Shown one piece after another: positions 20,949 through 45,945 of a stretch of DNA of 64,000 nt. Where the stretch lies: positions 13,082,001 through 13,146,000 of the forward strand of contig NC_043014.1 in the NCBI RefSeq assembly GCF_006345805.1, given 5' to 3'. Position 1 is the stretch's first letter; each line of letters begins with the position of its first letter. Made by a program: the position numbers and the translations under genes. Source of the stretch: Octopus sinensis. Its lineage: Eukaryota. The notes under the pieces are model-generated. The model did not search any database, was not told where the DNA came from, and saw only the letters and a program-made list of their open reading frames with translations.

Positions 20949-22723
20949 TTATCTTTGGGTATCTAATGATTTGGGCTGCCAGACTGGGGCTGTTGATTTA
21001 GGAAGTGCTGGCCGATTCCGAATGATATCTGCTGCTTTTTCAGCGAGCATGCAAGTCGGACCGTTTAAGTTGCCACTGACTACACTGGGCATGATTGAGG
21101 CATCTACGACACGAAGATTCTCAATTCCATAGACTTTAGTGTCAGGGCCGACCACAGCCATATTATCTGATGGATCTCCCATCTTGCACGTACAACATGG
21201 GTGATAGTTACTGTCAGACTTCTGACGGATAAATGCATCGATTTGTTTATCACTTTGGACATTGGGACCAGGAGCTAGTTCCTCACCTCTATAAGGATCA
21301 AAAGCTTTCTGTGCAAATATCTCTCTTGAGAGTTTGACATTATCTCTCATATCTACTACATCTTGTTCAGTTGTAAGGTAGTTAGCAATTATAATTGGAT
21401 GAACCTTAGGGTCTTTAGACATCAATTTCAAATAGCCTTTACTTGTAGGTCTCATAGGACCCACATAAAACTGATAAGCATGACATGAGCCTGCTTTGCG
21501 ACCATGATCATCCAAAGCAGATGGCAGAAAGTGGAATTGAATATCTGGATGTTCTACACCAGGTCTACTACGAATGAAACCTCCTGTTTCAAAATGAGAT
21601 GTAGCACCATCACCTGTAGATGTCAGAAACCATTGAAGTCCAATTTTAATCATGACATGTGGAAACTTCCATTGCGCTTTGTACAATGTGATTGGTTTAA
21701 GACATTTCTGTTGTAAGCAGACTACAAGATGATCCTGAAGATTTGAGCCTACACCAGGTAAATGATTAACAATTGGAATGTCCAGTTTTTTAAGGTCATC
21801 AGCATTGCCAATACCAGAAAGCATGAGAAGTTGTGGGGAATTGATAGCACCACCACTTAGAATCACTTCCTTGTTGGCCCTTACTTGGTGAATAACACCT
21901 TTCTGTTCGTACTCAATGCCAACTGCTTTGTTACCTTCGAAAAGGATCCTCCTGGCAAATGCATTTACTTCAGTGTCTAGGTTTGGTCTTTTTAACGACT
22001 TCCTCAGGTAAGCACTAGCTGTACTCCACCTCTTACCCTTGTGAACAGTCATGTCCATCCAACCAAATCCTTCTTGCTGGTAGCCATTCATATCATCAGT
22101 GAATGGGTAACCAGCTTGAACACCAGCATCAATGAAAGCTTGGTGCAGCTCGTTATTAGATTTACCCTGAGATACATGCAAGGGCCCTTCTCCTCCCCGA
22201 TATTCATCAGGACCCAGTTCATGTGTCTGAGATTTACGGAAATAAGGTAAACAGTCTGCATATGACCAGTTCAAAGCCCCTTCCTTTTCCCATCGGTCAT
22301 AATCAAGAGCATGACCCCGAATATATACCATTGCATTTAGAGAAGATGACCCACCCCAAACACGGCCCCTTGGCCAATACATTACTCGGTTGTCCATGCC
22401 TCTCTCCGGTTCTGTCATGTAGTACCAATTATATTTATCATCACATAGGTTGTATATCAGAGCTGCGGGCATGTGGATCTTCCAAGTATAGTCCTTTGGA
22501 CCAGCTTCCAATAGAAGTACAGTATTGTCAACATCTTCTGTAAGGCGATTACTGAGGACACACCCTGCAGACCCGGCCCCAACAACAACGTAACTATATT
22601 CCTTGGTGGCTGTTACTGAGTCTTTTGAAGATGTACTAAAATAACGACCAGTCGATTGGCTGCCTGAGAAAGGAGGTCGATGATGGCAGTGGGCAGTCAA
22701 CATACCAGGGTTTATCGGCAGGG
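20949..22723 (-). CDS. CHDH: Choline dehydrogenase-like terminal exon, distal copy (altered active site)
   Basis: Intact, 1775 nt, same acceptor. 29 aa differences from the proximal copy by my count, including DHLEVYI>DHLVVCL and SAYHP>SNYHP. Confidence 0.92.
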
Positions 22724-24372
22724 CTAGAGGGTAAGAGAAAGATGAATACAAAGTAGGATATAGTAGTATAAATACAGCAGACAACAGTTATATATAAACT
22801 CACTATTAAAAGCAGACAAATAAGTAATTTGATAACTTCTTCCAGGCCCAAGATTAGAAATTTAAGAGAAAGGGACAGTTGGTTATATCAACCCCAGTAA
22901 TTTACTAGTACCTATTTTATGAACCACGCAAAGAATGAAAAAGGAAAAGCATATGATGTGAACTCAAAATATAAAGTGTCATGTTTAAAAATGAAGGAGC
23001 ATGGCCTTATGATTAGGGTGTTGTACTCCCGATTCTGAATACCTACTTCTTTACTAACCACAAGGGGCCAAACACAGAGGGGACAAACAAGGACAGACAA
23101 ATGGATTAAGTCGATTACATCAACGCCAGTGCATAACTGGTACTTAATTTATTGACCCCGAAAGGATGAAAGGCAAAGTCGACCTCGGCGGAATTTGAAC
23201 TCTGAACGTAACGGCAGACGAAATACCGGTAAGTATTTCGCCCGGCGTGCTAACATTTCTACTAGCTTGCCCGATTCTGAATACCAGTCAAATTATAGAG
23301 TTTACTGGGTACTTTTTACAAGGCACCAGCATTAGTGAGGTCACCAAGAGCATGCTTGTACATGGTTGTTTGTGTGAATGTGTTTGTATTTTCCTCATCT
23401 TCACATGTGTTCACTTGCTAATTTCTAAGCAATGGCTTTACTGATGTTATTATTTGCTTGTAGTTCACTGCGAAAGCATGTACAGGATGCTTTTTCAGTT
23501 CTATATTTAAGAGATGAGGAATTATGTACATTATTTACATTTGACGGATATTTGTCCTCATCTTGTTTGTTGTTAACACAACATTTCAGCTGGTATACCC
23601 TCCACCCTGCTTCAGGTGTCTTGGGGAAATTTCAAACCCGGGTTCTCATTCCTACGGTATTTTTTGATGTTATTTTTATTGTTATTGTTCAGGTCACTGT
23701 TTGGAATTGAACTCGGAAACTTGGGGTTAGTAGCCTGCGCTCTTAACCACAACGCCATATGCTTTTTGCTTGGTAGATTGGGTGATAATTGTCTCACATG
23801 GAAGCAAATGGAGGCTGGGCAACAGGAAGAGCATACAGCCATGAAAATCTCTGTCCCAACAATGACAACTGAGAGTGGTACAACATTCAGAGATAAGACT
23901 GAATGACTCTTAAAACTTTAAGGTCTCTGCACAAGAGACCTTGTTTATGGCACAGGAGTGGCTGTGTGGTAAGTAGCTTGTTTACCAACCACATGGTTCC
24001 GGGTTCAGTCCCACTGCGTGGCACCTTGGGCAAGTGTCTTCTACTATAGCCTCGGGCCAACCAAAGCCTTGTGAGTGGATTTGTTAGACAGAAACTGAAA
24101 GAAGCCTGTCGTATATATGTATATATATATAAGCGTGTGTGTATTTGTGTGTCTGTGTTTGTCCCACTAGCATTGCTTGACAACCGATGCTGCTGTGTTT
24201 ATGTCCCCGTTACTTAGCAGTTCGGCAAAAGAGACCGATAGAATAAGTACTGGGCTTACAAAAGAATAATTCCTGGGGTCGAGTTGCTCGACTAAAGGCG
24301 GTGCTCCAGCATGGCCACAGTCAAATGACTGAAACAAGTAAAAGAGTAAAAGAGTGTATACACACATATATA

Positions 24373-24430
<58 letters not shown>

Positions 24431-27413
24431 TAGAATACATTGGTTGCTGCATAGCAGCAAAGTTATAATCCTTTAGACAAGAGAAAAGGAAACATAACAT
24501 GAAAGGGAGTGAAAGGAGTGGGGATAGCATGAGTTATCGTTGGGTATCTAATGATTTGGGCTGCCAGACTGGGGCTGTTGATTTAGGAAGTGCTGGCCAA
24601 TTCCGAATGATATCTGCTGCTTTTTCAGCAAGCATGCAAGTTGGACCGTTTAAGTTGCCACTGACTACACTGGGCATGATTGAGGCATCTACGACACGAA
24701 GATTCTCAATTCCATAGACTTTAGTGTCAGGGCCGACCACAGCCATATTATCTGATGGATCTCCCATCTTGCACGTACAACATGGGTGATAGGCACTATC
24801 AGACATCTGACGGATAAATGCATCGATTTGTTTATCACTTTGGACATTGGGACCAGGAGCTAGTTCCTCGCCTCTATAAGGATCAAATGCTTTCTGTGCA
24901 AATATCTCTCTTGAGAGTTTGACATTATCTCTCATATCTACTACATCTTGTTCAGTTGTAAGGTAGTTAGCAACTATAATTGGATGAACCTTAGGGTCTT
25001 TAGACTTCAATTTCATATAGCCTTTACTTGTAGGTCTCATAGGACCCACATGAACTTGATAAGCATGATATGGGCCTACTTTGCGTCCATGATCATTAAC
25101 AGTAGATGGTAGAAAGTGGAACTGAATATCTGGATGTTCTACACCAGGTCTACTGCGAATGAAACCTCCAGATTCTAAATGAGATGTAGCACCATCACCT
25201 GTAAAAGTCAGAAACCATTGAAGTCCAGTTTTGATCATGACATGTGGAAACTTCCATTGTGCTTTGTACAATGTGATTGGTTTAAGACATTTCTGTTGAA
25301 TATAGACTTCAAGATGATCCTGAAGATTTGAGCCTACACCAGGTAAATGATTAACAATTGGAATGTCCAGTTTTTTAAGGTCATCAGCATTGCCAATACC
25401 AGAAAGCATGAGAAGTTGTGGGGAATTGATAGCACCACCACTTAGAATCACTTCCTTGTTGGCCCTTACTTGGTGAATAACACCTTTCTGTTCGTACTCA
25501 ATGCCAACTGCTTTGTTACCTTCGAAAAGGATCCTCCTGGCAAATGCATTTACTTCAGTGTCTAGGTTTGGTCTTTTTAACGACTTCCTCAGGTAAGCAC
25601 TAGCTGTACTCCACCTCTTACCCTTGTGGACAGTCATGTCCATCCAACCAAATCCTTCTTGCTGGTAGCCATTCATATCATCAGTGAATGGGTAACCAGC
25701 TTGAACACCAGCATCAATGAAAGCTTGGTGCAGCTCGTTATTAGTCTTACCCCGAGATACATGCAAGGGCCCTTTTCCTCCCCGATATTCATCAGGACCC
25801 AGTTCATGTGTTTGAGATTTACGGAAATAAGGTAAACAGTCTGCATATGACCAGTTCAAAGCCCCTTCCTTTTCCCATCGGTCATAATCAAGAGCATGAC
25901 CCCGAATATACACCATTGCATTTAGAGAAGATGACCCACCCCAAACACGGCCCCTTGGCCAATACATTACTCGGTTGTCCATGCCTCTCTCCGGTTCTGT
26001 CATGTAGTACCAATTATATTTATCATCACGTAGGTTGTACTTCAGAGCTGCGGGCATGTGGATCTTCCAAGTATAGTCCTTTGGACCAGCTTCCAATAGA
26101 AGTACAGTATTGTCAGTATCTTCTGTAAGACGATTACTGAGGACACACCCCGCAGACCCGGCCCCAACAACAACGTAACTATATTCCTTGGTGGCTGTCA
26201 CTGAGTCTTTTGAAGATGTACTAAAATAACGACCATTCGATTGGCTGCCTGAGAAAGGAGGTTGATGATGGCAGTGGGCAGTCAACATACCAGGGTTTAT
26301 CGGCAGGGCTAGAGGGTAAGAGAAAGATGAATACAAAGTAGGATATAGTAGTATAAATACAGCAGACAACATTCATAAATAAGCTCACTATTAAAAGCAG
26401 ACAAATAGGTAATTAAGGGAAAGGGACAGTTGGTTATACCAACCCCAGTAATTTACTAGTACCTATTTTATGAACCACGCAAAGAATGAAAAAGGAAAAG
26501 CGTATGATGTGAACTCAAAATATAAAGTGTCATATTTAAAAATGAAGGGTCATGGCCTTGTGATTAGGGTGTTGTACTCCCGATTCTGAATACCAGTCAA
26601 ATTATAGAGTTTACTGGGTACTTTTTACAAGGCACCAGCATTAGTGAGGTCACCAAGAGCTTGCTTGTACATGGTTGTTTGTGTGAATGTGTTTGTATTT
26701 TCCTCATCTTCACATGTGTCCATTTGCTAGTTTCTAAGCAATGCCTTCACTGATGGTATCATTTGCTTGTAGTTCACTGCGAAAGCATGTACAGGATGCT
26801 TTTTCAATTCTATATTTAAGAGATGAGGAATTATGTACATTATTTACATTTGACGGATATTTGTCCTCATCTTGTTTGTCATTAACACAACGTTTTGGCT
26901 GATATACCCTCCAGCTTTCATCAGGTGTCTTGGGGAAATTTCAAACCTGGGTTCTCATTCCTACGGTATTTTTCGATGTTATTATTATTATTATTGTTCA
27001 CTGCTTGGAATCGAACTCGGAATCTTGGGGTTAGTAGCCTGTGCTCTTAACCACTATGCCACATGCTTTTTTTTTGGTAGATTGGGTGATAATTGTCTCA
27101 CATGGAAGCAAATGGAGGTTGGCAACAGGAAGAGCATCTAGCCATGAAAATCTCAGTCCCAACAACAACAACTGAGAGTGGTGCAACATTCAGAGATAAG
27201 ACTGAATGACTCTTAAAACTTTAAGGTCTCTGCACAAGAGACCTTGTTTATGGCGCAGGAGTGGCTGTGTGGTAAGTAGCTTGTTTACCAACCACATGGT
27301 TCCGGGTTCAGTCCCACTGCGTGGCATCTTGGGCAAGTGTCTTCTACTATAGCCTCAGGCCGACCAAAGCCTTGAGAGTGGATTTGTTAGACGGAAACTG
27401 AAAGAAGCCCATC

Positions 27414-27458
<45 letters not shown>

Positions 27459-30400
27459 TGTGTGCGTTTGTGTGTCTGTGTTTGTCCCCCTATCATTGCT
27501 TGACAACCAATGCTGGTGTGTTTATGTCCCTGTTACTTAGCGGTTCAGCAAAAGAGACCGATAGAATAAGTACTGGGCTTACAAAAGAATAAGTCCAGGG
27601 GTCGAGTAGCTCGATTAAAGGCGGTGCTCCAGTAGAAGACACTTGCCCAAGGTGCCACACAGTGGGACTGAACCCAGAACTTACCACACAGCCACTCCTA
27701 TGCCTCATTAACATTAAATATTAATTAACCTGAAGATTGACTGTTTTTGTCTCATATCTCATTGCTGATAATAAAACAAGTAACAATATGATTCAGGATT
27801 CAAAGGCAGTGAGCTGGCAGAATCGTTAGCATGCCAGGCAAAATGCTCCACAGCATTTTATCTTTATGTACATTCTGAGTTCAAATCCTGCTGAGGTCGA
27901 CTTTACCTTTCATCCTTTCAAGGTCAATAAAATCAATACCAGTTGAGCACTGAGGTTGATCTAACTGACTTACCCTCTTCCCCGAAATTGCTGGCCTTGT
28001 GTCAAAATTTGAAACCAATATGGTTTTGAGTTCAAATGAATGCACCATCTACCACCCAATAGATGACAACCTTGTGCCTGCTGAAAAAATATGCAATTCA
28101 TAAAGCAGTAAAAACCACTCAAACATGCTTAGTTGAACACAAAAAAAAAAAATAAGGAAAAAAAATGATTAATATTTTGGTTGCAACAAAATTTGAAGAG
28201 GGAAAGTTTGCTGTAAACAGGATTTAAAATGGAAAAACAAGCAATAATAATTAATAAATTGGATAACATGTGGAATGCATTTATGGCCATTATAAAACTG
28301 TTTAACCCTTTAGTGTTTAAACGGGCCATATCTGGCCCAGATATTCTACATGTTTTATATTCAAACTGGCCATATCTAGCCTCTCACACCTAACCTACAG
28401 TGACATTAAAAAAATAAACAATCACATCATTGAAACCTCAAAGCTATAACATAATGCATGATTAATTCAAAACAATTTGAGTGAAAAAGTATTACATTTA
28501 ACAGAGTAATCTGAACACTGAAGGGTTAATCTTTTAGCATTTAATCTGGTCATATCCAGCCCAAATATTCTACTGGTTTTAAGTTAAAACTGACTAGATC
28601 CAAACCCTCATACCTACGCTACAATATCATTCTAAATATATACAAACACACCATTGGGATCTTAAAGCTACAAAACAAAGTGTGATTAATTTAAAACAAT
28701 GTGAATAAATAAGCAATACATTTGACAAAGAAATTTAAATGCTTATGGTTTATATTTGAGATACATTAAATAATACAAGGAGCCAACCAAATGTTTATTA
28801 TTATTATTTTATTGTTGGTATTATTACAGTGCTGAGCTGGCAGAATTGTTACCGCGCTGGACGAAATGCTGCGTGGTATTTTGCCTGTCACTATATTCTG
28901 AGTTCAAATTCTGCCGAGGTTGATTTTGCCTTTCTTCCTTTCAGGGTAAAAAAAATTGAGTACCAGTAAGATATTAGGGTCAATGTTATCAACCAGTCCC
29001 CTTCCCCAAAATTTCAGGCCTTGTGCCTATAGTAGAAAGGGTTATTATTAAGGCAGCAAGCTAGCAGAATCATTAGCATGCTGGACAAAATGCTTAGCAG
29101 TATTTTGCCTGTTGCTATGTTCTGAGTTCAAATTCAGCCAAGGTCGACTTTGCCTTTCATCTTTTCACGGCTGATAAATTAAGTACTAGTCAAGTACTGG
29201 GGTTGACATGATCAATCCCCCCCGTCTCCCCCCCCCACAAAAATCCAGGCCTTGTGCCTATAGTAGGAAGGATTATTGATATTTTGGAATAAAATGCCTT
29301 TTACATATTTCAAAAGTAAAATACAAATCAGTTTAAACGACAAAAACCATTGAAGTTTTGAACTGAAAACATCAAAGGTTTCATCATTTAATTTAATTTG
29401 TTATTCTCTTTCAAATATTGAGGAAAGGTATTTTATACAGAAATATCAGAATTATATTGAAACCCTCCACTACACACAGACACATATATTATTAAACAAA
29501 GATTTTATTGTAATAATTTTTCATTTAATCACAAAAATAAAAAGATAATACCTCACCATGAAAAAATATGTATTGCAGAGCAAAGACTCTGATATGAATC
29601 TGAACATTTTGTGTTAGATTCTCTCAAGGACCAAATCATACAAATAAAAACAGAAAATATTAAAAAACGTTTTGGAAGGAAGTTTATAGTTTTCCTGACA
29701 CGCGCAGAAGAGACTTGTAGCTTAATCATCATCTGTGATGGGTAAAACATAATTCTGAAAGAATTTTCGTAAAAAGGTAAAAAGGAAAAAGTTACTTTGT
29801 TGTGTCTAGGGAGGGTCATTATGCCACTATAATTAATACATGCACTGGTTCAGTTCCACTTCTTTATTATTAGTGAATTGGTTAAATATCCAACTAACCA
29901 ATCAATTGTTTGTTAACTTGGTTAATTAGTAACTCATTTGCAAGTAGCAACAAAAGAGCTTTGACAAACAAAAACAAAACAAATGATTTACTGTTTAACC
30001 AAATTAAATAAACAATCAATTTGCTTCACTATGATAGATCGCAATACACATTCTATATTTTCTCTCCTTGTTTCTTTCTGTGGAAGAGCATAGGCTCGAA
30101 ACATTAAAGATTTTTTCACTTCCCGAGCATTATACTAATACATCTGTTTGTTGTCTACACCACCTGTCTTCGTCTTTTATTTTTTTTGTGAATTCTCTCC
30201 ATATATTACACACTCACGTGGCTGCACCAGTTGATCCTGTCTCCTCTCATCATCCACGAATTCTACACTTCTACGGATTCTACCTGTCTTCTCTCATCAC
30301 CCACCAACTTCTACTGGACTTTCTACACTTCAGCTGCACCTCTCCTGCCTATGGATTACACTGAACTCCTCTGTTGACGAAGAATCCATTAGTTAGTTGG

Positions 30401-32413
30401 ATATTCAACCAATAGACTAATAATAAGGGAGAGGAACTGAACCAGTGTGAGTGTTAATAATACTGGCATAATGACTCTCTAGACACAGCAAAATTTGTAT
30501 CAACACATGAATTCACATAAAGAATCTTGTACACCAACTACAAAAATGAAAAAGAAAAAGTTACTGCCAGTTGCGAACTCTGAAACGAAGATGGGAGGAA
30601 GAAGAGAAGAGAAAGATAAAGAAGGGGAGGCTCTGGAAAATAGAAGTTTTGAAAAACTCTTTAATTGATTTTTAATTAATATTTAAAACATAAATTCAGA
30701 GCTGGAAAAAATTACAGTAATATGCTTATTTCAAAATTCCACCTTAGAATTATTGCAAACCAGAGTGCCCACCCAGTATGTTCTGAAGTTGCCCTCTCCC
30801 TACCTGAAAGCATCAAAGACTGCTGATTGGCCTGTATAAAAATGTGTGAATTGGTATTTCTACAGAACAATGACAATAGCAGTGAACATAGCAATTTCAG
30901 TGAGGAATTCTCTACATCAGTGGTTCCCAAACTTTTTAGAGTCTCAACCCACTATTTATCACACCAGTTTATGACGACCCACTTAACTCTACTGAACTAT
31001 CTCAATAGACAGCAGTTAATCAAAGCTAATGCGTAATTTTATAACTTTTTGCGACCCACTAAGATTCCGTTTGCGACTCATAGTTTGGGAACCACTGCTC
31101 TACATGGTTACTCAACATGCTAGAAATAGCAACCAAATCACCTCCACACTACACTGTCATCTGCAATAATTCTTTGAATGTGTATTTCACCTGTCGCTAA
31201 GTTCTGAGTTTAAATTCCGCCAAGGTCGTCTTTGCCTTTCATCTGTTCAGGGTCGATAAATCAAGTACCAGTGAAACACTGGGGTTGATGTAATCGACTC
31301 ATCCCCTCCCCCAAAATGTCTGCCCTTGTGGCAAAACTTGAAACCATTATTATTGCTGTTGTTGTTGAAAGCTACCAGAATTGTTAGCTTGGTGGCATTT
31401 TGTGCATCTTTACGTTCTGGGTTCAAATTCTGTTGAGGTTGACTTTGCCTTTTGTCCTTTCAGGGTCGATAAATTAAGTACCAGTGAAACACTGGGGTCA
31501 ATGTTATTGACTATCCCCTCCTCCAAATTTCAGGCCTTGTGCCTATAGTAGAAAGGATTATTATTATTGTGGTAAGCTAGCAGAATCATTTGCTTAGCAG
31601 CATTTCGTCCATCTTTAAGTTCTGGGTTCAAATTCCGCTGAGGTCGACTTTCCCTTTCATCCTTCCAGGGTCAATAAGATAAGTGCCACTTGAGAATTGG
31701 GGTTGATGAAATCAACTTACCCCTTTCCCCCAGACTTTCTGGCTTTGTGCCAAAATTTGAAATCACTACCACCATTACCATTTAATGCTCGCGATACCAG
31801 AGGGCGCAAACTCTCCTATCCTGATGTAATCTCCAGGGATACAGGCATCCAGCAACAGGACCTCCGTAATGCTATGATGGACTGGGAAGTCTGGCGTAAC
31901 ATAGTAAATTCCATTGTCTCGACCACAGTCAAACAATGATGATGATTTAAAACTGTTTGATTTGGCTGTATGCAGCTTAAAGTCTTACAGGCTCCTTGCA
32001 GAAACCTGGGTCGTCGGGCTCAGGGAATCAATTCAGCTATACAAGCCTCACTAGGTAGGTTATTGTAAGGAGCCTACAAAATTCTAAGTTGCATGGGGAT
32101 GAATCAAACTGCTGCAAACAATGATAGACGTAACTCCAACTAAATGTGGTGAGTGGCTGCTTTCATTTGTCCACTCACTCCTAGGTATGTAAGTATGTAT
32201 GTAAATATTCTTTTACTTGTTTCAGTCATTTTGACTGTGGCCATGCTGGAGCACCGCCTTTAGTCGAGCAAATCGACCCCAGGACTTATTCTTTGTAAGC
32301 CTAGTACTTATTCTATCAGTCTCTTTTGTCGAACTGCTAAGTTACGGGGATGTAAACACACCAGCATCGGTTGTCAAGTGATGTTGGGGGGACAAACACA
32401 GACATATACGCAC

Positions 32414-32459
<46 letters not shown>

Positions 32460-32706
32460 CACCCACTACACTCACGGAGTGGTTGGCGTTAGGAAGGGCA
32501 TCCAGCCGTAGAAACACTGCCAGATTTGACTGGGCCTGATGAAGCCTTCTGGCTTCACAGACCCCAGTAGAACCGTCCAACCCATGCTAGCATGGAAAAC
32601 GGACGCTAAATGATGATGATGATGATATATATGTTATCCCATGGTGGGTTGAATTTTCAACCCCTATCTCATTTTATAACCTATATATAAATATATATAT
32701 ATATAC

Positions 32707-32745
<39 letters not shown>

Positions 32746-35700
32746 CAACGGGCTTCTTTCAGTTTCCGTCCACCAAATCCACTCCCAAGGCTTTGGTCGG
32801 CCCAAGGCTATAGTAGAAGACACTTGCCCAAGGTGCCACGCAGTGGGACTGAACCTGGAACCATGTGGTTGATAAGCAAGCTACTTACCACACAGCCACT
32901 CCTATGCCTATATGTATACAAAATATGTATATATTTTGTTTGTGTTTGTATTGCGAGATTCTTCATGTGACCTTTTTTTAAAAAATTTTGTTGCATGTTA
33001 GGAGGGTCATCAGGCCAACAATAAACACATGTACTGGTTTTATTTCACTTCTTCATTTTTGAAGAAGCCTGAAGTAGAGTATGTCACTGATGAGATCACA
33101 AATGAAAAGAACTTTGACAAAACTAGGCGATTTATTGATGATTAAACAATTGATAATTTAATTGGTTAAATGATTAACCAATCGACTAATGAATATAAAA
33201 AAGTGAACAAGAACCAGTGTGTGTGTTTGCTTTTATATGTATGTATATGTGCATTCCTGCATTTATTTATTATGCTTGAAGCTCAACAACACACAATTTT
33301 CACCGGTAAGAGTAAAGATCCTAAAATAGGGAAATTTGAAGGATTGTTCTGATACAAGAGATGTAGGTTCAAGTTCCATGGGCAGTATTCAACTTTTTCT
33401 ATCCAAAGGTTTGTTTTTTTTTTTAAGCCAATATTTAGATGCTACTATTTATAGCTTATCTGCTTCAAGATTCAATGTTCCATAAAAGCACTATTTCAGG
33501 TTCTGCTGAAGTTCGTAAAATTCCTATCCTGTCAATGACAAATATCATATTTAATATTACATAATTGTTTTTATATCTTGGGAAATTTTTAGTTTTATAA
33601 GGTTATTCATTGAGTTAGATGTTTCATTTAATTGAAGAATTGTACGTTTAGAAGATTAGCTTAACTTCTTGTTCAGTGAGTACTTTTAGGATGAGCTATA
33701 TAAAAGATGTTAATAGAAATGGTATATATATATATATATATTGTTGCCAGAGCAGCTAACTGGCTTCTGTGCCGGTGGCAGGTAAAAAGCACCATTCGAG
33801 CGTGATCATTACCAGCGTTGCCTTACTGACACTTGTGCTGATGGCACGTGAAAAAACATTCCAGCAAGGTCGTTGCCAGTGTCGCTGGACTGGCTCCTGT
33901 GCAGGTGGCACATAAACACCATTTGAGCATGGCTGTTGCCAGTACTGCCTGACTGGCCCGTAAAAGCACCCACTACACTCTCGGAGTGGTTGGCATTAGG
34001 AAGGGCATCCAGCTGTAGAAACTCTACCAGATCAAGATTGGAGCCTGGTACAGCCATCCGGTTTGCCAGTCCTCAGTCAAATCATCCAACCCATGCTAGC
34101 ATGGAAAGCGGACGTTAAACGATGAAGATGATGATGATATAGGATAAAATTAAAGTTTAAATTTAAAATTTACATGTTGGGTGTGTCCCTAGTAGTATGA
34201 TGATGATAAAGCACATTCACTGCTTATGGCTACCTGGCATCATCCACAGTAATAGCACAATCATTGTTGGATCGGTGTTAGGAATTCCTTAATGCACGTT
34301 GAGTATAGTAGAAACAATGGATGGAGTATACTGGAAACTTTGTTTATCACAACGATCATTTTGACACATCCTGCATCGCTCTCTTGCGGGTGGGAAACTA
34401 TACCATGACTTACGGTGCAGAAGCATCCCATCAGGTGTAGATGTACTTTTATAACATTTTGACTCAGCTCCATAAGACTTAATGTTACATGGGTGCACAG
34501 GACATACCCATCTCATCAAATATGGTGACAGACTTCACGAAATGACTGAAAAATCCAATAACCTGGAAGATACTAATGCATCTACCAAGCAGGTAATAAC
34601 TGTAGATTATTGTCTCAAACAATGTGATCTTGTTATGATCTAAAGTTGTAATAAAATTAGTAAAGATGTTCCACAAGGATCTGAAGTTTTTATATATTGA
34701 GGCCTACTCACCATTCTTTCAGGTGAAAGACTCATAGGGCTGGCTCCCAGGCTTCTGTGGCACATATATTTTCCCTTCCTGGATAGAACACCAGTCCATC
34801 ACAGGATTACTCGCTTTTGTCAGCTGAGTGAACTGAAGCAATATGAAATGAAGTGTTTTGCTCAAGAACACACTGCATCACCAGGGCCAGGAATCGAAAC
34901 CACAATATTACAATCACGAGTCCAATACCCTAACCCCTCAGCAAATCACCTCCACATCAACTGAAATGCAGGAGGGAACAGGTTATATCTCGGATGAAAC
35001 CAAGGTTGCTTCAAAAAACAACCATTGTCTGCAGTTTGAGTTTTTTTCATAGGCGCAGGGGTGGCTGTGTGGTAAGTAGATTGCTTACCAACAACATGGT
35101 TCTCGGTTCAGTCTCACTACGTGGCACCTTGGGCAAGTGTCTTCTACTATAGCTTCGGGCCGACCAATGCTTTGAGTGGAATTGGTAGACAGAAACTGAA
35201 AGAAGCCCGTCGTATGAATGTATATATATATATATGTGTGCGCGTGTGTGTTTGTGTGTCTAGCATTGCTTGACAACCGATGCTGGTGTGTTTATGTCCC
35301 CGTCACTTAGCGGTTCGGCAGAAGAGACTGATAGGATAAGTACTGGGCTTACAAAGAATAAGTCCCAGGGTCGATTTGCTCGACTAAAAGCGATGCTCCA
35401 GCATGGCTGCAGTCAAATGACTGAAACACGTAAAAGAGAGTATTGTCTGCAGTTTCTTGAGTGTATCTCATGAAGCACTCCATATTCAACACGATACTCT
35501 TTGTCTTACTGTTGCATCCCTGGGGTGGTTCCATAAAGTTGCCAATATTGTTACTGAAGAATTCAATTATAAGCATTATTTCCAGTGGTTACTCCAGCAA
35601 GTCTTCAATAGATGAACTCGAGTCTAACTTCTCCAAATCCGTATTTCACTTTCATTGGCAAGCACAAGGGTACATTTGAAGAATTCCACCAGTATCATTC

Positions 35701-38700
35701 TTCTTTAAATTCTAAGAAATCATCGCAGAAGTCTTCGAGACATAGTTTCTTCCAAATTTTGTCCTAGATTATTTTGATATACATGACCTTCGTGATATCA
35801 GATTTTTTTTTTATCTTGGTCATTTGTCCTCTCAACAAGTTCTTTGAGAGTGTAAGAGACAGCAGGTCATTATGCCAAAAATTACAACCCTATCCATGGA
35901 CTTGAGTAAAGTAGTGGCATTTGGTGATAGGCAAACTAATTCAACAAGAATACATGTCTTGAGGGTGTCAAGATTCTGGAGTTTATCAAACACAAATGTT
36001 ACCTTATGGAAAAGGTTGTGTTCTTCAAACTGATTTTTTTTTTCACTGTTGGGTAAAAATATGAAACACCACAGTATGAAATTTTCTATAATAACCCAGG
36101 CTTTTTAGTTTGATTTTCCAATCACATGTACATCAGTACATCTGAATGATAAATGAACAATTGCTTACATCTGAAGTCTTCTAAAGCAATACCACCAAGC
36201 AGTAGGGTTAAATGGTCTTTTCCAGCCTTGACACAAAAAGCATTTAAAAAATTTTTCCTAAAGACTAAAAATGCAGGATGACATTCATTTTTAGATAATG
36301 TTTTTCATTTATATAGAATAAAAGTCAGGGAGGGTATTTACCACACTCAAAAATAACCTTAAGAACCAAAAGAAATTCCTTGGTTCCCTGGGGTTTACAC
36401 TTTCAGCTTTACCATACATACAGAGGTTTTGCAGTGTTGGACTCTTTGAAACCAACCTCTGCTAGTAGTAAATGTTTCTGATTTATTTCATTCTTCTAGT
36501 AAGTGATTAAAGATGCTCCTTGGTTTTGCATTGTATGTTGACTTGATGGCATGCTGCATTCCTTCTTCAGCTACCTCCATAGGAAATATAGTTGATATTT
36601 TCCCAAAAGTTTACTCTTTGAACAAATCACTTCAATGATATTGAGATTTTCAAAGCATTTTTCACAATTGTTCTAACCATTCATTCACTGGTAGAATGTA
36701 TCATATAAAACATGTTTTACTCTTAGCATTTTTAAGAAAAGCTTATATTTAGGAAGTTATTTCACGTTAAAGTTCTTGTATTTCAGTAATTTCAACCAAT
36801 CAATGACGTGTATTCAGCTGAATGAAATTACTGAATACACGTCATTGATTGGTTGAAATTACCGAAATAGGCCTACTTTGACGTGAAATTAGCTGCATAC
36901 ATCAAATACTTGCAAACTTTTCAAGTTCTTGAACACATACAATTTTATATCCACCATGATGCTTATCCATTATTTAGATGGATTTTTCAGCACTTGGGAG
37001 TTAGAGGTTGCTTTTCATGCAAGATATGCATAGCAAAACGACATGAGCATACTATCGTGTACAACAGAATTGTTCAAGTGTGAATCAGTTTCTAATATGA
37101 TAGCACACAACTATAACAATAATCATGTCTGCTGTAGGCATGAAACCTGAAATTTTGCAGGTGGTGGTGGGTGTCAGTTAATTACAGAGACCCCAGAGCT
37201 CAACTGGTATTTATTGCATCAAATGCAAAAGGACGAAAAGCAAAGCCAACCTTGGTGGAATTTGAACTCAGAACTTAAAGATCAATGAAATGCTACTAAG
37301 CATTTAGTGTTAGTGGGCGTATTACTGTGTGTTTATACCGTATATATTGTGAAACCTTTTTGAGAACAGAATTTTCACTAAAAAAATGTCACCAAAGGAA
37401 AATTATTAAATTAAAAATCTACCTAAGTATTCTCGCATGATAATTTCTCAGTAATTGGTTAAATTTACAGTCTATGTTCTAAAGCAATTATTAAATCAAT
37501 TTCTTTTTTCTGAAATTGTTAAATGCAAAGTCTATTGTGACATGTATATATATATATATTTAAAAATACAGTTTTCTGTATATTAACAGTTTTATTATTA
37601 TATTCAATACTTTTACATAAGATAAAAATATTTTCTGTGTTCATCAGGTTATGGGCACACTAGTACCCATTTTCTATATACAAATCAGCCTTGTGTTTCC
37701 TCAAAAAGAAACAATAGTTTACTTCTGTTTTGACTTGACTGGTTCACTCTTTTGTTGGCCTGTTTATTTTAATATCCTGCAGTAGGTACCCTTAAAATAA
37801 GGACCCCACAGACTGGAGGAGGGGGATAACTAAATACACTTAATATTTTGGTAGTTTTACAGCACTGGTTCTTAACCCGAGTGGTAATGCCCTCATAGAA
37901 GTTGCTAATGTGAAGGAGGAACCATAGCGGAGACAGGAACATTGGGTGTTTAGAGGGCTTGCAATATTTTCAGAGAAAAATATTTCACCCTTTAGCATTT
38001 AAACTGGCCACATCTATGCCAAATTTTCTACCAGTCTCATGTTGAAATTGACTAGATCCTGTCTCTCACACCTACTGTACAATGCCACTCTACAAATGAA
38101 CAGTCACATCATTAAAGTCTCAAAACTACAAGATAATATATGATTAATTCACAACAATGTGAATAAACAAGCATTACATTTCACTGATTAATCTGAAAGC
38201 TAAAGGGTTATACCTAGTACAGTTCTTATATTAGGAAATTAGAAACACATTTCCAAAATGTCTTTGTTAAGATTAAAGTATGAATGGACATGAAGTTATC
38301 AGTGAGCAAGAATACAACTGATTTTTTCTTTTATTGCATCAAGGTCCAATATAATTTCATTAAGTCTTCACCTTTATTAGTTATTTCCATAAAAAAAATT
38401 AACACAGTAACACTAAAAACAAATATATGATGGATGTGACAGAAGAAAACTAACTTTCGTTTGATTAAAATAAGCCTTGAGCGAATTTGGTAGATGGAAA
38501 CTGAAAGAAGCCCATCATGTGTATACGTCTGTGTCTCTTTGAATTAACATCTCATGATTGTTGTAAAAGAGTGTTATTCATTTCAAATATTCTCCAAAGG
38601 CATATCTAGCTCTGGGGAAATAAACCTTACTTGGAAACAACTAAGGATTAGCAATGAGAAGGGCATCCAGCAGCAGAAATCTATCTCAAATTCTGTGCAA

Positions 38701-41700
38701 GTCATGCAAGCACAGAAAAGTGGACCTTAAACTGATGATGATAGGGTTTCATCAAAATACTGGGAGTGCATCTTTTGAACACCATTCCATGAATGGAAGA
38801 CACTGAGCTACGAAAGGTTAAGAAGCGCCATTTTACAATGAATTATCTTTTTTTTTTGTTGTTCTTGTTTCTAATAAAATAATCTATTTTATTAACATAA
38901 GTGCAGGAGTGGCTGTGTGGTAAGTAGCTTGCTTACCAACCACATGGTTCCAGGTTCAGTCCCACTGCGTGGCACCTTGCGCAAGTGTCTTCTACTATAG
39001 CCTCGGGCCGACCAAAGCCCTGAGTGGATTTGGAAGACGGAAAGCGAAAGAAGCATATATATATATATATGCATGTGTGTGTATATGTTTGTGCGTCTGT
39101 GTTTGTCCCCCCAACATCACTTGACAACCGATGCTGGTGTGTTTACATCCCCGTAACTTAGTGGTTCGGCAAAAGAGACTGATAGAATAAGTACTAGGCT
39201 AACAGAGAATAAGTCCTGGGGTCTATTTGCTTGACTAAAGGCAGTGCTCCAGCATGGCCACAGTCAAATGACTGAAACAAGTAAAAGAATATTTAATCTA
39301 GAATAATCTAAAACAGACCCCGTCTCTGCAAACAAATACCTTTTTGGTTAACAATCAGAACTTTTACTGGTTTATCTGTGAAGAAAAACAAGCTTTTGAA
39401 TATAATGAATGATTTGTGAGATGAAAATGAAGATGATATTTAAGTAAAGGAATGTTAGCTGAAAGAACAGAGAGAGAGAGAAATAGCTTCCACAGAACTC
39501 AAGACAAACTGTTGTTACGAGGTTTGTCAATTGAAATAGATCCCAGCATATTTTAAGTATTAAGTGTATTTTATCAGAAATCAGAAAGAAGCCAAGTAAA
39601 AATTAAGGGAACTACATAGGCATAGGTATGATTGTGATTAAGGTCACTTTGCAACCACATAGTTTTGGGTTCAGTCCCACTGCACAGCACCTTGAACAAG
39701 TGTCTTTTACTATAAGCCTTGGGTTGATCAATGCCTTGTGAGTGACTGCAGTAGAGGCAAGCCATTTGGAAGCTTCCCATATTAAAATCGGTGGACTCAT
39801 TTGTTGAGGACAGCAGATAATTTTTTGTAACTAAACACTTTCAAATTTCGGACACTGGTAGAATGTCTCATATAAAACATATTCTACTCTTAACATTTTT
39901 TAGAAAAGCTTATATTTAGGAAGTTATTTCATGTTAAAGTTCTTGGATTTCAGTAATTTCAACCAATCAATGACGTGTATTCAGCTGAATAAAATTACTG
40001 AATACATGTCATTGATTGGTTGAAATTACCGAAATAGGCCTACTTTGACGTGAAATTACTTCGTAAATATAAGCTTTTCTCAAAAATGCTAAGAGTAAAA
40101 CATATTTTATGACACATTCTACCAGTGTCCGAAATTTGAAAGTGTTTAGTTACAAAAAATTATTTTTAAAATCTGTACGTCAAAAGGTAAAGATCCCAGA
40201 TGAATGTTCCACAGCTTCCTGCTGAACAACCTGCACAGGTAATTTGTTTATATCAATCAAACGTCAGGTGCCAGCGATTGCAGAGCAACATAAAAATGAA
40301 GTGTTTTGCTCAAGAACTCAATACACTGCCTGGCCCTGATCTTGCGGTTTTGAATGCTACATGCCTTCTCTATCTCACACACACTTACTTGTACTTGTGG
40401 CGACATTCACCCTGGGCGGGTTGAGTCAGCTTCTACTACTCTCGAGGCATCTTGAACCATGGCAGCCCACGCATGATGGTCCTGCGTCAGTTCACTGGAG
40501 ATAGCGAGCCAGTCACAGTTCCATCGGCGCAGACTGACCACCTGCGGTCCCGTGAGCATGGAGAGGTCCTCCTTGATCATTGTAACCCAGGTCTTCAGCT
40601 GCCCGCCCGCGCGTTTCTGCCAGTTGGGAAGTGGAGTTGGGAGAAGGACATCATGGCTCAGTTCACCCACCGGACGCCTACATGCATGGCCAAACCACCG
40701 CAAGTGCCGTTGCAGAAGGACAGATGGAAGGGGCCACAGAGACAGGCGAAGTCGGAGATAGGCAGTGGGAACTCGATCCACCCGATGGCAGCGAAGAATG
40801 CACTGGAACCAGTCATTGTCGAAGACTTCCAGCCTTCATTGATCGACCACCCGCATAGGCCACGTTTCACAGCCATAGAGAAGTACTGTAAGAACAGTAC
40901 ACACATGTAATTGTGTGCATATGTAACTGGTATTGGTTTGTTTACATGCCCCTAATTTGGCAGTTCAGCAAAAGAGCCAGTAAAATAAGTACAAACTCAA
41001 GAAATAAGTACTTGGGTCAATTTTCAACACTAAAACACTTTAAAGCAGGCAGTGGCCAAGCATGCCGATGCCCAATGACCGAAAGAATTATAAAAGGTGA
41101 AAGATATACAGAATTTAGTTGAATGTTTTGTCCTCAGCCCTCAGCATCTGCACAGGTCAAAAGTTTTAAAATATTACCTGTTCAATAAATGTGCCAGGTA
41201 CTGCTGCACTCAACTGATTGTCTTAAAAATAAGATTTATTCTTCTTCATTACAGACTCACCTCCACCTCCACCACCATCACACAAAAACTGTTTTAGTTC
41301 ATGAAAATACAAAAACCTAGAAGAAAACAGGTGCAACCAGTTTATTCTATATCACAGTGCAACAGATAAGGTGAGGTTAACTATTTGAATGATTAATTAG
41401 TGAAAGTGTAAATGAAGCAAACTAGAAGCAGGTGACAGGTAAATGCAATTTATTAATTTTCTTTTGCAAATGAATCAAATTTCAATACAAACTTTTACAA
41501 TTTTTTGCTGTTATCTAATTCATGTAAACTTTTTGTTCCTTTGAAAAATTTGGAAATTGGTCTAAACTGTTGGAATTGTTAAAGAAGGGCAGTTAGAATC
41601 TCTGAAGTAAATGAAGAATTTTAATATGGTTTTCTTTAAAAAGAATGTTAAAATAATTAATACTGCTAAGAAATTTTAAAAAAAAGGGAATCATTTAATA

Positions 41701-44700
41701 AAATAGGAAGAAAGAAATGGTTGAGGAATGGATGGTTAAACTAAAAGAGCAAGACATCAAATTCCCAAATTTCTCACAACAGATTTGTTCTTTTTCATTA
41801 CAGGGGAAGAGAATAGAGAGACAGGTGGGTGTAGAAATAAAATGAACATGAGTTTATAACTAACAAGCTTTGTAAAGGTGAATACTTTAATACACAGAAA
41901 AAGATGACAGTCTTCTTGTAAAAAAAACAATTAAAAAATGCAAAACAGAATATTTATATATACACACATATATATGTATATATATATATATTATATATAT
42001 TTACAATTAGAATACATTGGTTGCTGCATAGCAGCAAAGTTATAATCCTTTAGACAAGAGAAAAGGAAACATAACATGAAAGGGAGTGAAAGGAGTGGGG
42101 ATAGCATGAGTTATCGTTGGGTATCTAATGATTTGGGCTGCCAGACTGGGGCTGTTGATTTAGGAAGTGCTGGCCGATTCCGAATGATATCTGCTGCTTT
42201 TTCAGCAAGCATGCAAGTTGGACCGTTTAAGTTGCCACTGACTACACTGGGCATGATTGAGGCATCTACGACACGAAGATTCTCAATTCCATAGACTTTA
42301 GTGTCAGGGCCGACCACAGCCATATTATCTGATGGATCTCCCATCTTGCACGTACAAGATGGGTGATAGGCACTGTCAGACATCTGACGGATATATGCAT
42401 CGATTTGTTTATCACTTTGGACATTGGGACCAGGAGCTAGTTCCTCACCTCTATAAGGATCAAATGCTTTCTGTGCAAATATCTCTCTTGAGAGTTTGAC
42501 ATTATCTCTCATATCTACTACATCTTGTTCAGTTGTAAGGTAGTTAGCAACTATAACTGGATGAACCTTAGGGTCTTTAGACTTCAATTTCATATAGCCC
42601 CTACTTGTAGGTCTCATAGGACCCACATGAACTTGATAAGCATGGCATGGGCCTACTTTGCGTCCATGATCATTAACAGTAGATGGCAGAAAGTGGAATT
42701 GAATATCTGGATGTTCTAAACCAGGTCTACTGCGAATGAAACCTCCAGATTCTAAATGAGATGTAGCACCATCACCTGTAAAAGTCAGAAACCATTGAAG
42801 TCCAGTTTTGATCATGACATGTGGAAATTTCCATTGTGCTTTGTACAATGTGATTGGTTTAAGACATTTCTGTTGAATATAGACTTCAAGATGATCCTGA
42901 AGATTTGAGCCTACGCCAGGTAAATGATTAACAATTGGAATGTCCAGTTTTTTAAGGTCATCAGCATTGCCAATACCAGAAAGCATGAGAAGTTGTGGGG
43001 AATTGATAGCACCACCACTTAGAATCACTTCCTTGTTGGCCCTTACTTGGTGAATGACACCTTTCTGTTCGTACTCAATGCCAACTGCTTTGTTACCTTC
43101 GAAAAGGATCCTCTTGGCAAATGCATTTACTTCAGTGTCTAGGTTTGGTCTTTTTAACGACTTCCTCAGGTAAGCACTAGCTGTACTCCACCTCTTACCC
43201 TTGTGAACAGTCATGTCCATCCAACCAAATCCTTCTTGCTGGTAGCCATTCATATCATCAGTGAAGGGGTAACCAGCTTGAACACCAGCATCAATGAAAG
43301 CCTGGTGCAGCTCATTATTAGTCTTACCCCGAGATACATGCAAGGGCCCTTCTCCTCCCCGATATTCATCAGGACCCAGTTCATGTGTCTGAGATTTGCG
43401 GAAATAAGGTAAACAGTCTGCATATGACCAGTTTAAAGCCCCTTCCTTTTCCCATCGGTCATAATCAAGAGCATGACCCCGAATATACACCATTGCATTT
43501 AGAGAAGATGACCCACCCCAAACACGGCCCCTTGGCCAATACATTACTCGGTTGTCCATGCCTCTTTCCGGTTCTGTCATGTAGTACCAATTATATTTAT
43601 CATCACATAGGTTGTACATCAGAGCTGCGGGCATGTGGATCTTCCAAGTATAGTCCTTTGGACCAGCTTCCAATAGAAGTACAGTATTGTCAGCATCTTC
43701 TGTAAGGCGATTACTGAGGACACACCCTGCAGACCCGGCCCCAACAACAACGTAACTATATTCCTTGGTGGCTGTCACTGAGTCTTTTGAAGATGTACTA
43801 AAATAACGACCAGTCGATTGGCTGCCTGAGAAAGGAGGTCGATGATGGCAGTGGGCAGTCAACATACCAGGGTTTATCGGCAGGGCTAGAGGGTAAGAGA
43901 AAGATGAATGATAAGAAGTTTGTACAATAGATAACAATTATATATAAGTTCACTTTAAAATCCAGACAGAACAAAACTAATACCTGAAGCAAGTGACTAA
44001 TAATATTATAAAATAAGTTAATAATGATTAAATTAATTAAAGAACAAAATAAATAAAAATGACATAAATGCTGCGGTAATTAAGGTGACAAGGGTAAAGC
44101 AAACGAAGCATATCACAAAGGTAAAGGATTACAATACATTCATAATAATAATAATAATAATTCTTTGCCCTAGGTGTCGGGAAGACACCCAGCAAGAAAT
44201 GGAAACATAACTGAAAGAAAAAAAAAATAATAGTAATAAGATCTCTTGCCTGGGCAGTGTTGTAGGAGAAGGCAGCAGAAGTACTCTTTAGAAAGGTACT
44301 TATGATCAACCACTCCAAAACAAACAAACAAATAATAGATAAATAAAAATAAATAAAGTGAAATAAAGAAAAACACCAACAAATCAAACTTTCGAAGCTA
44401 TCAAATCTTCAACATTTTTCTGATTTCTAATATTAGTGTGTCTAGCTAAAAAAATTTCTAACGGTAAGGTACAACCAACTGATTCAACTTTGGTATATTG
44501 CTGGTAGTTATTTTATCAATAATTTGATAAATAGATGAAAGGTTGATAACCATTAAAGACTGCACAGTACTGTTGTTCTCCTGATTCTGCCATCCGACTG
44601 CCCTGGACATACTAATGGCAGCATTAAGACTATTCTGTAGAGACCTGAATAAGTGGAAATCCGAAGGAGCAATATTTGGTGAATATGGAGGGTGGAGTAA

Positions 44701-45898: not shown

Positions 45899-45945
<47 letters not shown>

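Follow-up and report, generated by a model that had tools for sequence, protein, structure and literature searches.

A triplicated CHDH terminal exon at a HAD-HAD'-CHDH fusion gene of Octopus sinensis: one normal gene ending and two putative stand-alone paralogues

The last exon of an ancient fusion gene appears to have been duplicated at the DNA level in the Octopus lineage, with the proximal copy serving as the normal ending of the gene and the distal copies most likely acting as stand-alone paralogues; we give this reading a probability of roughly 0.55. The locus belongs to Octopus sinensis and comprises a HAD-HAD'-choline dehydrogenase (CHDH) fusion gene plus two extra CHDH exons further downstream. 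All features described here lie on the minus strand, and coordinates refer to the window, the whole stretch of 64,000 nucleotides that was analyzed.

Exon 1 of the fusion gene (60837 to 60963, with the ATG at 60963) encodes a presequence-like segment whose N terminus agrees with P0002 and P0046, and it ends at a phase-1 donor, CTACAG↓gtatgt. HAD domain 1 begins in exon 2 (59483 to 59678; motif I, FDKDGT), exon 3 (56443 to 57258) holds its remainder and the onset of HAD' (motif I variant, IDLHGT), and exon 4 (52358 to 53010) completes HAD' and closes with a phase-1 donor, AAAAAG↓gtaatg, at 52358. The canonical CHDH terminal exon of this gene, LOC115221581, is the proximal, A-type copy, referred to as copy 3 (42111 to 43885), which retains the ancestral residues. 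RefSeq protein XP_029647642.1 is identical to exons 1 to 4 plus copy 3, confirming the junction 52358>43885. The architecture is not new: HAD-HAD'-CHDH proteins of ~1190 amino acids are annotated in molluscs, nemerteans, and one annelid, and the fusion is conserved across these phyla, as are the R-x-F/Y-S-T motifs of the linker. HAD domain 1 carries all four HAD motifs (DKDGT, CTAD, PKP, and GDTKVD, each conserved in 32 to 36 of 36 homologues), and its profile scores fall under every equivalog cutoff. HAD' does not carry the motif I to IV set. Its motif I reads D-L-H-G-T, with His in place of the second Asp in 26 of 32 homologues; it lacks the motif III Lys, and motif IV is SDCAKN in Octopus versus GD..D elsewhere.

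Downstream of this gene lie a middle copy, copy 2 (24534 to 26308), and a distal, B-type copy, copy 1 (20949 to 22723), both intact CHDH exons. They are carried by two tandem units with a period of 3585 nt (20926 to 24309 and 24509 to 27632, spanning 20926 to 27632 together), and copy 1 follows copy 2 at a distance of 1.8 kb. As a preliminary description of this DNA had claimed, each copy measures exactly 1775 nt, counted from the base that follows ...CTCTAG through the last base of the stop codon, and, given the G from the upstream exon, all three frames are intact, with 0 frameshifts and 0 internal stops. The tract TTCATCTTTCTCTTACCCTCTAG precedes every copy, the phase-1 acceptor is common to all three and fits the phase-1 donor of exon 4, and we confirm the introns given earlier as 8.5, 26.0, and 29.6 kb. 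The same description had reported that upstream the proximal copy soon ceases to resemble the other two and that the 3' flank of copy 1 is more diverged than its coding sequence; we place the upstream limit 83 nt before the acceptor, at 43968, and find 79% identity to the proximal flank versus 96.7% in the coding sequence. Between copies 1 and 3, the 3' flank shows a K2P distance of 0.25 and seven indel events in about 330 columns. Identity at the acceptors extends over at least 23 nt, and the copies differ from one another by 2 to 3%, as well as in their flanks.

A B-type upstream block of ~320 nt (22724 to 23043) is common to copy 1, copy 2 (26309 to 26594), and copy B of Octopus bimaculoides, and its homology to the copy 3 intron is limited to its last 83 nt. 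Downstream of copy 3, a candidate poly(A) signal, ATTAAA (41886 to 41891), lies 220 nt past the stop; the block around it is conserved in the copy 1 flank, where the homologous ATTAAA (20741 to 20746) stands 203 nt past the stop. Copy 2 is without this block; it runs into a SINE-like repeat 160 nt past its stop, and AATAAA first occurs 854 nt downstream.

The triplication is real. All three copies recur, with matching copy-specific substitutions and residues, in an independent assembly of Octopus vulgaris, and we rejected an assembly or haplotype artefact on that basis. The region is evidently hard to assemble, both copies in the short-read assembly of O. bimaculoides being interrupted by runs of N, but the recurrence in O. 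vulgaris, the 2 to 3% divergence, and the distinct flanks leave an artefact with next to no probability. The copies are direct repeats with definable unit boundaries that recur in related genomes, as expected of tandem duplication: O. bimaculoides has at least two copies (A and B), and Argonauta has one, with the next gene 2.4 kb downstream. The first duplication would have occurred after the Argonauta split and before the O. bimaculoides split, giving rise to the B-type copy (copy 1), and it may have carried the exon, along with ~85 nt of intron sequence and ~0.5 kb of the 3' flank, 10 to 15 kb downstream. Copy 2 would have been added beside copy 1 later, in the lineage of O. sinensis and O. 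vulgaris.

Gene conversion has acted on the copies. Synonymous divergence (dS) between them is 0.04 to 0.05 outside one core region, far under the K2P distance of the flanks, and 0.18 within that core. Over the first 354 nt at the 5' end, O. bimaculoides copies A and B differ from each other at 3 positions and from the O. sinensis copies at 7 to 14, so that paralogues are closer than orthologues. In copy 2, a mosaic, the 5' flank is of B type, whereas the coding part and 160 nt of the 3' flank are of A type. Taken together, these patterns indicate that the coding likeness among the copies is maintained mainly by gene conversion, which keeps most of the coding sequence, plus the adjoining acceptor, nearly identical. 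The earlier step from a diverged flank to selection on the open reading frame (ORF) is therefore confounded, since a dS outside the core five times below flank divergence is itself the signature of conversion. Likewise, the identical acceptors follow from the recent common origin of the copies and from conversion reaching the 5' end of the exon and need not reflect use. Copy B of O. bimaculoides already has two substitutions within the acceptor tract.

By family, the encoded module resembles choline dehydrogenase (BetA/CHDH) and choline oxidase in its GMC domains, FAD motif, and catalytic residues. GMC_oxred_N and GMC_oxred_C are found in copy 3 with Pfam E values of 1.6e-57 and 2.6e-37, and all three copies have the N-terminal GxGxxG motif (GAGSAG) and the equivalents of His466 (YHP) and Asn510 (SGNLN), which were placed by numbering at choline oxidase chain positions 465 to 467 and 508 to 512. 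Scored for copies 3 and 1 against the NCBIfam betA equivalog TIGR01810, with its cutoff of 732.1 bits, both pass, at 763.3 and 752.1 bits, respectively. The nearest solved structure is 9lq0. Unlike both enzymes, the octopus CHDH is the C-terminal module of a ~1190-amino-acid fusion with two HAD-type domains.

Copy 1 departs from this family picture in its substrate-binding core, at exon nt about 990 to 1340, which has not been converted. Its E327V aligns with Glu312 of choline oxidase and its A499N with Val464, so copy 1 has Val and Asn where choline oxidase has Glu and Val. Glu312 of choline oxidase binds the trimethylammonium group of choline. At the equivalent position, copies 3 and 2 have E (QDHLE), as do 34 of 36 homologues, whereas copy 1 and its O. 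vulgaris orthologue have V (QDHLV). The part played by Glu312 in substrate binding and positioning is the stated subject of Quaye et al. (2008). Positions replaced in the copy 1 core are conserved in 33 to 35 of 36 homologues, and the ratio of nonsynonymous to synonymous lineage changes there is 20:6 in copy 1 versus 5:7 in copy 3. The derived Asn is also present in copy B of O. bimaculoides. Having escaped conversion in the core, copy 1 would have undergone a burst of replacements at near-invariant positions while keeping its frame ever since. Lacking the choline-binding Glu, copy 1 should not be classed functionally as a choline dehydrogenase; the enzyme that it encodes has probably changed its substrate.

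The core also bears on whether the distal copies are silent, or nearly silent, duplicates whose frames stay open only through overwriting by conversion from the proximal copy. The strong conversion signal agrees with such a reading, as do the missing poly(A) block and the SINE-like repeat close behind copy 2, an unconvincing annotated 5' exon for that copy (below), and the loss from copy 1 of residues that are near-invariant elsewhere. Nevertheless, the unconverted 348 nt of the copy 1 core (dS 0.18) contain 0 indels and 0 stops next to an indel-rich flank, and we estimate the chance of an indel-free core under neutrality at about 5e-4. The B-type copy has moreover persisted, with its derived Asn, from before the O. 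bimaculoides split, and copy 1 remains above the betA cutoff. For copy 1, omega between O. sinensis and its O. vulgaris orthologue is 0.11; within the core, the same comparison yields 3 nonsynonymous and 0 synonymous differences, which counts against our main reading, and outside the core, the low omega could partly stem from conversion by the selected proximal copy. On balance, we consider silent duplicates improbable.

Copies 2 and 1 most likely work as stand-alone CHDH paralogues, if gene models are taken as a guide to transcription. Each is annotated as a CHDH gene in its own right, both in RefSeq for O. sinensis and in the annotation of O. vulgaris. Copy 1 is annotated as a single-exon coding sequence of 584 amino acids that begins at an internal Met (22703), 20 nt past the acceptor, and the 584-amino-acid protein with that start is on record at NCBI; no promoter was identified for copy 1. 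The internal Met is found in every Octopus copy (GML) and is missing from the single-copy Argonauta gene (ALL). Copy 2 is annotated as a separate gene, XP_036366616.1, with its own 5' exon at 33.3 kb. This first coding exon (33379 to 33266) falls within a segment that we call exon X (33266 to 33528). Three Octopus species share the conserved exon X acceptor, ttgacag↓G, and an O. bimaculoides isoform uses it with exon 4. The exon X ORF is not conserved, the RefSeq ATG being CTG in O. vulgaris and the interior being frame-shifted in O. bimaculoides, and there is no GT or GC donor after 33266 in the O. sinensis assembly. The RefSeq 5' exon of copy 2 thus looks doubtful. The fusion gene still normally ends in the proximal copy, and we propose that the distal copies are transcribed alone or from exon X as a noncoding upstream exon. 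Translation from the internal, in-frame Met would then give a 584-amino-acid protein whose N terminus (...↓STSS) still resembles a mitochondrial presequence and includes the cleavage motif R-x-F↓S.

The preliminary description had instead proposed one presequence-HAD-HAD' module spliced to any of three CHDH exons. For the proximal copy, this holds, since the product equals the RefSeq protein; use of copies 2 and 1 as alternative endings finds no support so far, as these have separate gene models and no fused protein on record. The proposal would have a single upstream promoter and, after read-through of the proximal poly(A) site, in-frame splicing of exon 4 to copy 3, 2, or 1, yielding three HAD-HAD'-CHDH isoenzymes. 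Splice phase and intact acceptors are as such an array needs, and the fused ORF is open at 1188 amino acids with each of the three copies. The different substrate pocket of copy 1 would give such a bank a purpose. Skipping and read-through are even annotated: O. bimaculoides isoform X3, which ends in ...NKKG and a stop, links exon 4 to an acceptor 6.8 kb past copy A. The retained acceptor and phase, together with this skipping isoform, also fit read-through splicing. The frame of that isoform, however, stops at the first exon X codons, so no fusion arises by that route, and the identity of the acceptors is accounted for by conversion, has already eroded in O. bimaculoides copy B, and would let the first transcribed acceptor win.

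Transcripts or proteins joining the constant part to each exon are represented, by protein lookup and RefSeq isoforms, for the proximal junction only. Exact lookup in a collection of 15 billion proteins retrieved no fused protein with copy 2 or copy 1 as its ending, and RefSeq isoforms X1 and X2 both end in copy 3. The first differences among the copies fall at exon nt 45 and 109 (copy 2 is first recognizable at nt 45 and 72, copy 1 at nt 109), so junction reads with less than 45 to 109 nt on the CHDH side cannot separate them, and the silence of the annotation is therefore weak evidence. No conserved docking or selector complementarity was found; when the initial 1.5 kb of intron 4 was compared with the 500 nt before each acceptor, the longest complement was 11 nt, within the range of shuffled controls. 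Alternative endings are unlikely in our estimation, if more probable than silent duplicates. Were they used, one HAD-HAD' module would reach mitochondria attached to either a canonical choline dehydrogenase or a Glu-to-Val module, and the 3' end of this enzyme gene would act as an exchangeable catalytic cassette.

Several known systems resemble parts of this locus or of the layouts proposed for it. Gene fission by duplication and partial degeneration has reportedly occurred in the Drosophila monkey-king family. There too, a partial duplicate of a multidomain gene carries only one module and may turn into a gene with one domain, the parent gene remaining complete. In the octopus, only the last exon was copied, bringing an internal Met and a presequence-like linker with it, and a putative stand-alone gene could arise from it without any degeneration. 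In Drosophila lola and mod(mdg4), many diverged 3' exons stand behind constant 5' exons with direct transcript evidence, including trans-splicing in mod(mdg4). The alternative-ending layout would be alike in having a constant 5' part and several same-phase 3' terminal exons, but the octopus exons are three in number, nearly identical, and, for the distal two, covered by separate gene models. UGT1A and the clustered protocadherins share with the octopus a tandem bank of duplicated large exons beside shared exons, although their variable exons are 5', each with its own promoter, and selection among them takes place where transcription begins; a mirror-image layout would call for regulated bypass of poly(A) sites, to which nothing here points. 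Concerted evolution of tandem duplicates by gene conversion, as in globin and opsin duplicates, offers a further parallel, with coding sequences much more alike than flanks, paralogues closer than orthologues, mosaic copies, and one unconverted block. In this respect, the octopus CHDH exons are one more example, with no difference in kind.

By exact protein look-up, the window belongs to Octopus sinensis chromosome record CM016876.1. The fusion gene LOC115221581 occupies five exons of the minus strand. Its presequence-like N-terminus is encoded by exon 1 (60963-60837) and HAD motif I (DKDGT) by exon 2 (59678-59483); exon 3 (57258-56443) contains the end of HAD domain 1 and the beginning of a second, divergent HAD domain (HAD'), and exon 4 (53010-52358) completes HAD' and ends in a phase-1 donor (AAAAAG/gtaatg). 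The CHDH part is a single exon of 1775 nt, present three times on the same strand: the proximal copy 3 (43885-42111), the middle copy 2 (26308-24534), and the distal copy 1 (22723-20949). All three are open in the phase-1 junction frame and directly preceded by TTCATCTTTCTCTTACCCTCTAG. Of the 1775 positions, 33 distinguish copies 3 and 2, 58 distinguish copies 1 and 3, and 57 distinguish copies 1 and 2. The preliminary description of three intact exons with a shared phase-1 acceptor, intron lengths included, is right in all details.

Exons 1 to 4 joined to copy 3 encode exactly RefSeq XP_029647642.1 ("uncharacterized protein LOC115221581 isoform X1"), so the proximal junction is canonical; the single-copy gene of Argonauta hians has an identical acceptor tract. 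The fusion itself is old, and annotation already includes it. Querying with the fused protein returned full-length HAD and GMC matches of ~1160 to 1235 aa in gastropods, bivalves, nemerteans, and an annelid, and shorter HAD and GMC matches in amphioxus and a copepod (880 and 924 aa, ~76% of the query). The ~1190-aa fusion (homologues P0003-P0035) is also found in cephalopods, mostly under the name "uncharacterized protein." One fused O. vulgaris model (P0054, CAI9737432.1) has another 64-residue N-terminus (MDFIAPGSMHT...) and a CDS spanning 70 kb; it probably takes in exons of an upstream gene and not the presequence exon. HAD domain 1 retains all four catalytic motifs. HAD' (53010-52358 and 56560-56443, minus strand) has a variant motif I, D-L-H-G-T, with the second Asp replaced by His in 26 of 32 homologues; motif III lacks its Lys, and the Octopus motif IV (SDCAKN) is degenerate. 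HAD' is probably noncatalytic or of different chemistry. Our guess is that a phosphatase step is coupled to choline oxidation en route to glycine betaine. A literature search returned no paper covering this locus or a HAD-CHDH fusion; one paper mentions only that a choline dehydrogenase gene is highly expressed in one type of brain cell in a different octopus. A fusion this widely conserved and still uncharacterized merits biochemical study.

Comparison across species excludes an assembly artefact as the source of the additional CHDH exons. O. vulgaris has three copies with the same copy-specific residues, and O. bimaculoides has two, copy A (proximal) and copy B (distal), each broken by runs of N, the interval between them being collinear with that between copies 3 and 2 of O. 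sinensis. Copy A has a stop five codons early (...VWQPKT; O. bimaculoides sequences L003:26896-26910 and L006), and the end of copy B is full. Argonauta has a single CHDH exon and a neighboring gene 2.4 kb downstream on the opposite strand. An oxoprolinase-like neighbor seen in Argonauta has no clear match within positions 1-20900 of the window. Retroposition was rejected as the origin of the intronless exon: the copies have intron sequence and acceptor in common, and the CHDH part of the single-copy Argonauta gene is also one exon.

Homology of copy 3 to the other copies begins 83 nt upstream of the acceptor and on the 3' side reaches 160 nt in copy 2 and ~460 nt, with many indels, in copy 1. 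Copies 2 and 1 form a tandem repeat of 3585 nt with ~1.3 kb of upstream sequence in common. Copy 2 is a chimera: its 5' flank is 94 to 96% identical to that of copy 1, whereas from the coding part through the adjoining 160 nt of 3' flank it is 96 to 98% identical to copy 3. Between the flanks of the A type (copy 3) and the B type (copy 1), the K2P distance is ~0.25, which exceeds O. sinensis-O. bimaculoides intergenic divergence (86 to 91% identity) and fits a first duplication before the O. bimaculoides split, with copy 2 arising later. Microsatellites of (TA)n/(CA)n type at 24374-24430, 27415-27455, 41950-42005, and 45900-45942 mark the 3' boundary of the homology between copies 3 and 2 and recur nearby; they may be duplication or conversion breakpoints. 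Dispersed SINE-like repeats (e.g., ...ttcggggtcgataaattaccagttg...) flank the copies and exon 4 at 24130-24350, 39000-39290, 46290-46780, 53060-53200, and 23060-23150, one of them starting directly past the microsatellite downstream of copy 2. Elsewhere in the window, the ORFs at 6061-6912 (minus strand) and 61800-62460 (plus strand) look transposon-derived: ...YIGQTGRRLADRFAEHLRDI... recalls a GIY-YIG nuclease, and the other resembles a reverse transcriptase tail. This reading is one of resemblance alone, since Pfam gave no match for the ORFs tested (6061-6912, 61977-62183, and 62180-62458).

Synonymous divergence between copies 1 and 3 is 0.04 to 0.05 over the 5' 990 nt and the 3' 430 nt of the exon, 0.18 at nt 990 to 1338, and 0.25 in the flanks. 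Over the first 354 nt, copies A and B of O. bimaculoides differ at 3 sites and either differs from the O. sinensis copies at 7 to 14. The O. sinensis and O. vulgaris orthologues of copy 2 are as far from each other (39 sites) as copy 2 is from copy 3 (33 to 44 sites), and their patches are not the same. The likeness of the coding sequences is the result of concerted evolution by gene conversion. The earlier argument from a diverged 3' flank to selection on the ORF fails as it was stated, because conversion explains the likeness. The acceptor is identical among copies because it lies at the edge of the conversion-covered 5' part, and the acceptor tract of O. bimaculoides copy B already has two substitutions.

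Constraint on copy 1 is nevertheless real: its unconverted 348-nt core has no indels and no stops, and its 3' flank has seven indel events in ~330 columns. By our own estimate, the chance of an indel-free core at the flank rate is ~5e-4. Omega between O. sinensis and O. vulgaris orthologues is 0.09 for copy 3, 0.23 for copy 2, and 0.11 for copy 1, values that could be lowered by conversion from a selected copy. Such conversion might even maintain silent copies, an explanation that we regard as improbable given the intact state of the unconverted core.

The three copies are already RefSeq genes. Copy 1 is annotated by NCBI as a single-exon CDS of 584 aa starting at an in-frame Met 20 nt into the exon, and copy 2 as XP_036366616.1 (629 aa), whose first 38 residues come from 33379-33266, 7 kb upstream, within what we call exon X (33266-33528, minus strand). 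The O. vulgaris annotation is alike, with one fused protein and two 584-aa proteins. This annotation of the distal copies is weak evidence, because junction reads that reach <45 nt (copy 2) or <109 nt (copy 1) into the CHDH exon fit more than one copy, and because exon X makes a poor candidate for coding sequence. The copy-diagnostic bases lie at exon nt 45 and 72 for copy 2 and, for copy 1, at nt 109 and in a cluster at nt 999-1334. As for exon X, O. vulgaris has CTG in place of its ATG, and in O. bimaculoides its interior is frameshifted; it was accordingly rejected as a conserved coding exon. In the model XP_036366616.1, ...FKHNK (up to 33266) is spliced to the copy 2 acceptor. After 33266, however, the genome reads TAAATG: there is neither a GT or GC donor nor a G for completing the Ala codon, the O. 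bimaculoides donor (AAAG/GCAAGT) having been removed by a deletion of 16 nt that O. sinensis shares with O. vulgaris.

The preliminary description had proposed that exon 4 is joined in frame to copy 3, 2, or 1 as alternative terminal exons, an arrangement with which phase and acceptors are compatible but which we consider unlikely. In O. bimaculoides, the CDS of isoform X3 (...NKKG, then stop) ends at L003:33732, just past an acceptor, ttgacag/GGTAA, that is orthologous to the start of exon X in O. sinensis (ttgacag/GATAG at 33528). In that model, exon 4 therefore bypasses copy A and is joined to a site 6.8 kb farther on. That route yields no fusion protein because the frame stops at once, whereas a direct junction of exon 4 to copy B would make one. 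With identical acceptors, moreover, the first one transcribed would be expected to dominate, and an exact-complement search for docking/selector pairing between intron 4 and the three acceptor regions, which might favor one acceptor over another, found nothing above shuffled sequences. An exact look-up in a collection of 15 billion sequences found no fused protein with copy 2 or copy 1 as its end; octopus fragments assembled from reads are very few in this collection, and its 90%-identity clusters merge the three copies. Isoform X1 of O. bimaculoides (...NKKEILTALL, then stop) joins exon 4 to an acceptor, ttttag/AA, 505 nt past the copy A stop (L003:27415-27438), skipping the CHDH ORF. The orthologous O. 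sinensis site (41602-41582) lacks the AG (ccagtg/AA), and the X1 model may be affected by the N gap within copy A.

Rather than serving as alternative ends, the distal copies are probably expressed as stand-alone proteins. All Octopus copies have the in-frame Met, with a purine at -3, and Argonauta is without it (ALL where Octopus has GML). The N-terminal 36 residues are basic and Ser/Thr-rich and end in GRYF/STSS. The R-x-F/Y-S-T motif lies in the HAD'-CHDH linker (43885-43760, minus strand, with its counterparts in copies 2 and 1), is kept across phyla, often twice, and resembles a mitochondrial processing-peptidase site. This suggests either that the ancestral CHDH left a relic presequence or that the fusion protein is cleaved internally. 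An ATTAAA block 220 nt past the copy 3 stop is retained by copy 1.

Copy 1 has a rebuilt substrate pocket. In alignment with Arthrobacter choline oxidase (chain numbering), the Glu of QDHLE corresponds to Glu312, the A, Y, and H of SAYHP to Val464, Tyr465, and His466, and the N of SGNLN to Asn510. Quaye et al. (2008) reportedly studied Glu312 for its part in binding choline and positioning it. At the Glu312 position, copy 1 and its O. vulgaris orthologue carry Val, and at the Val464 position they carry Asn, which O. bimaculoides copy B shares; they additionally have Y329C, L371F, V397L, and H413Y. The altered positions are conserved in 33 to 35 of 36 non-Octopus homologues. With Argonauta as the outgroup, the copy 1 lineage fixed 20 nonsynonymous and 6 synonymous changes (13 and 2 in the core), and the copy 3 lineage 5 and 7. 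Copy 1 retains the catalytic His and Asn and scores above the betA cutoff. We read copy 1 as a putative substrate-changed paralogue and not a decaying copy; rebuilt at near-invariant positions yet intact, its pocket is a candidate for a new cephalopod GMC oxidoreductase activity.

Overall, we give a probability of about 0.55 to the reading that tandem duplicates of the terminal exon are separate CHDH-type paralogues, homogenized by conversion, of which copy 1 is neofunctionalized. The parts worth following are the copy 1 pocket and the HAD-HAD'-CHDH fusion. With its internal Met and relic presequence, the last exon of a fusion gene can, once duplicated, become a single-domain enzyme gene again in a single step. 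As a whole, the finding is genuine but for the most part an ordinary, if tidy, example of partial gene duplication accompanied by concerted evolution.
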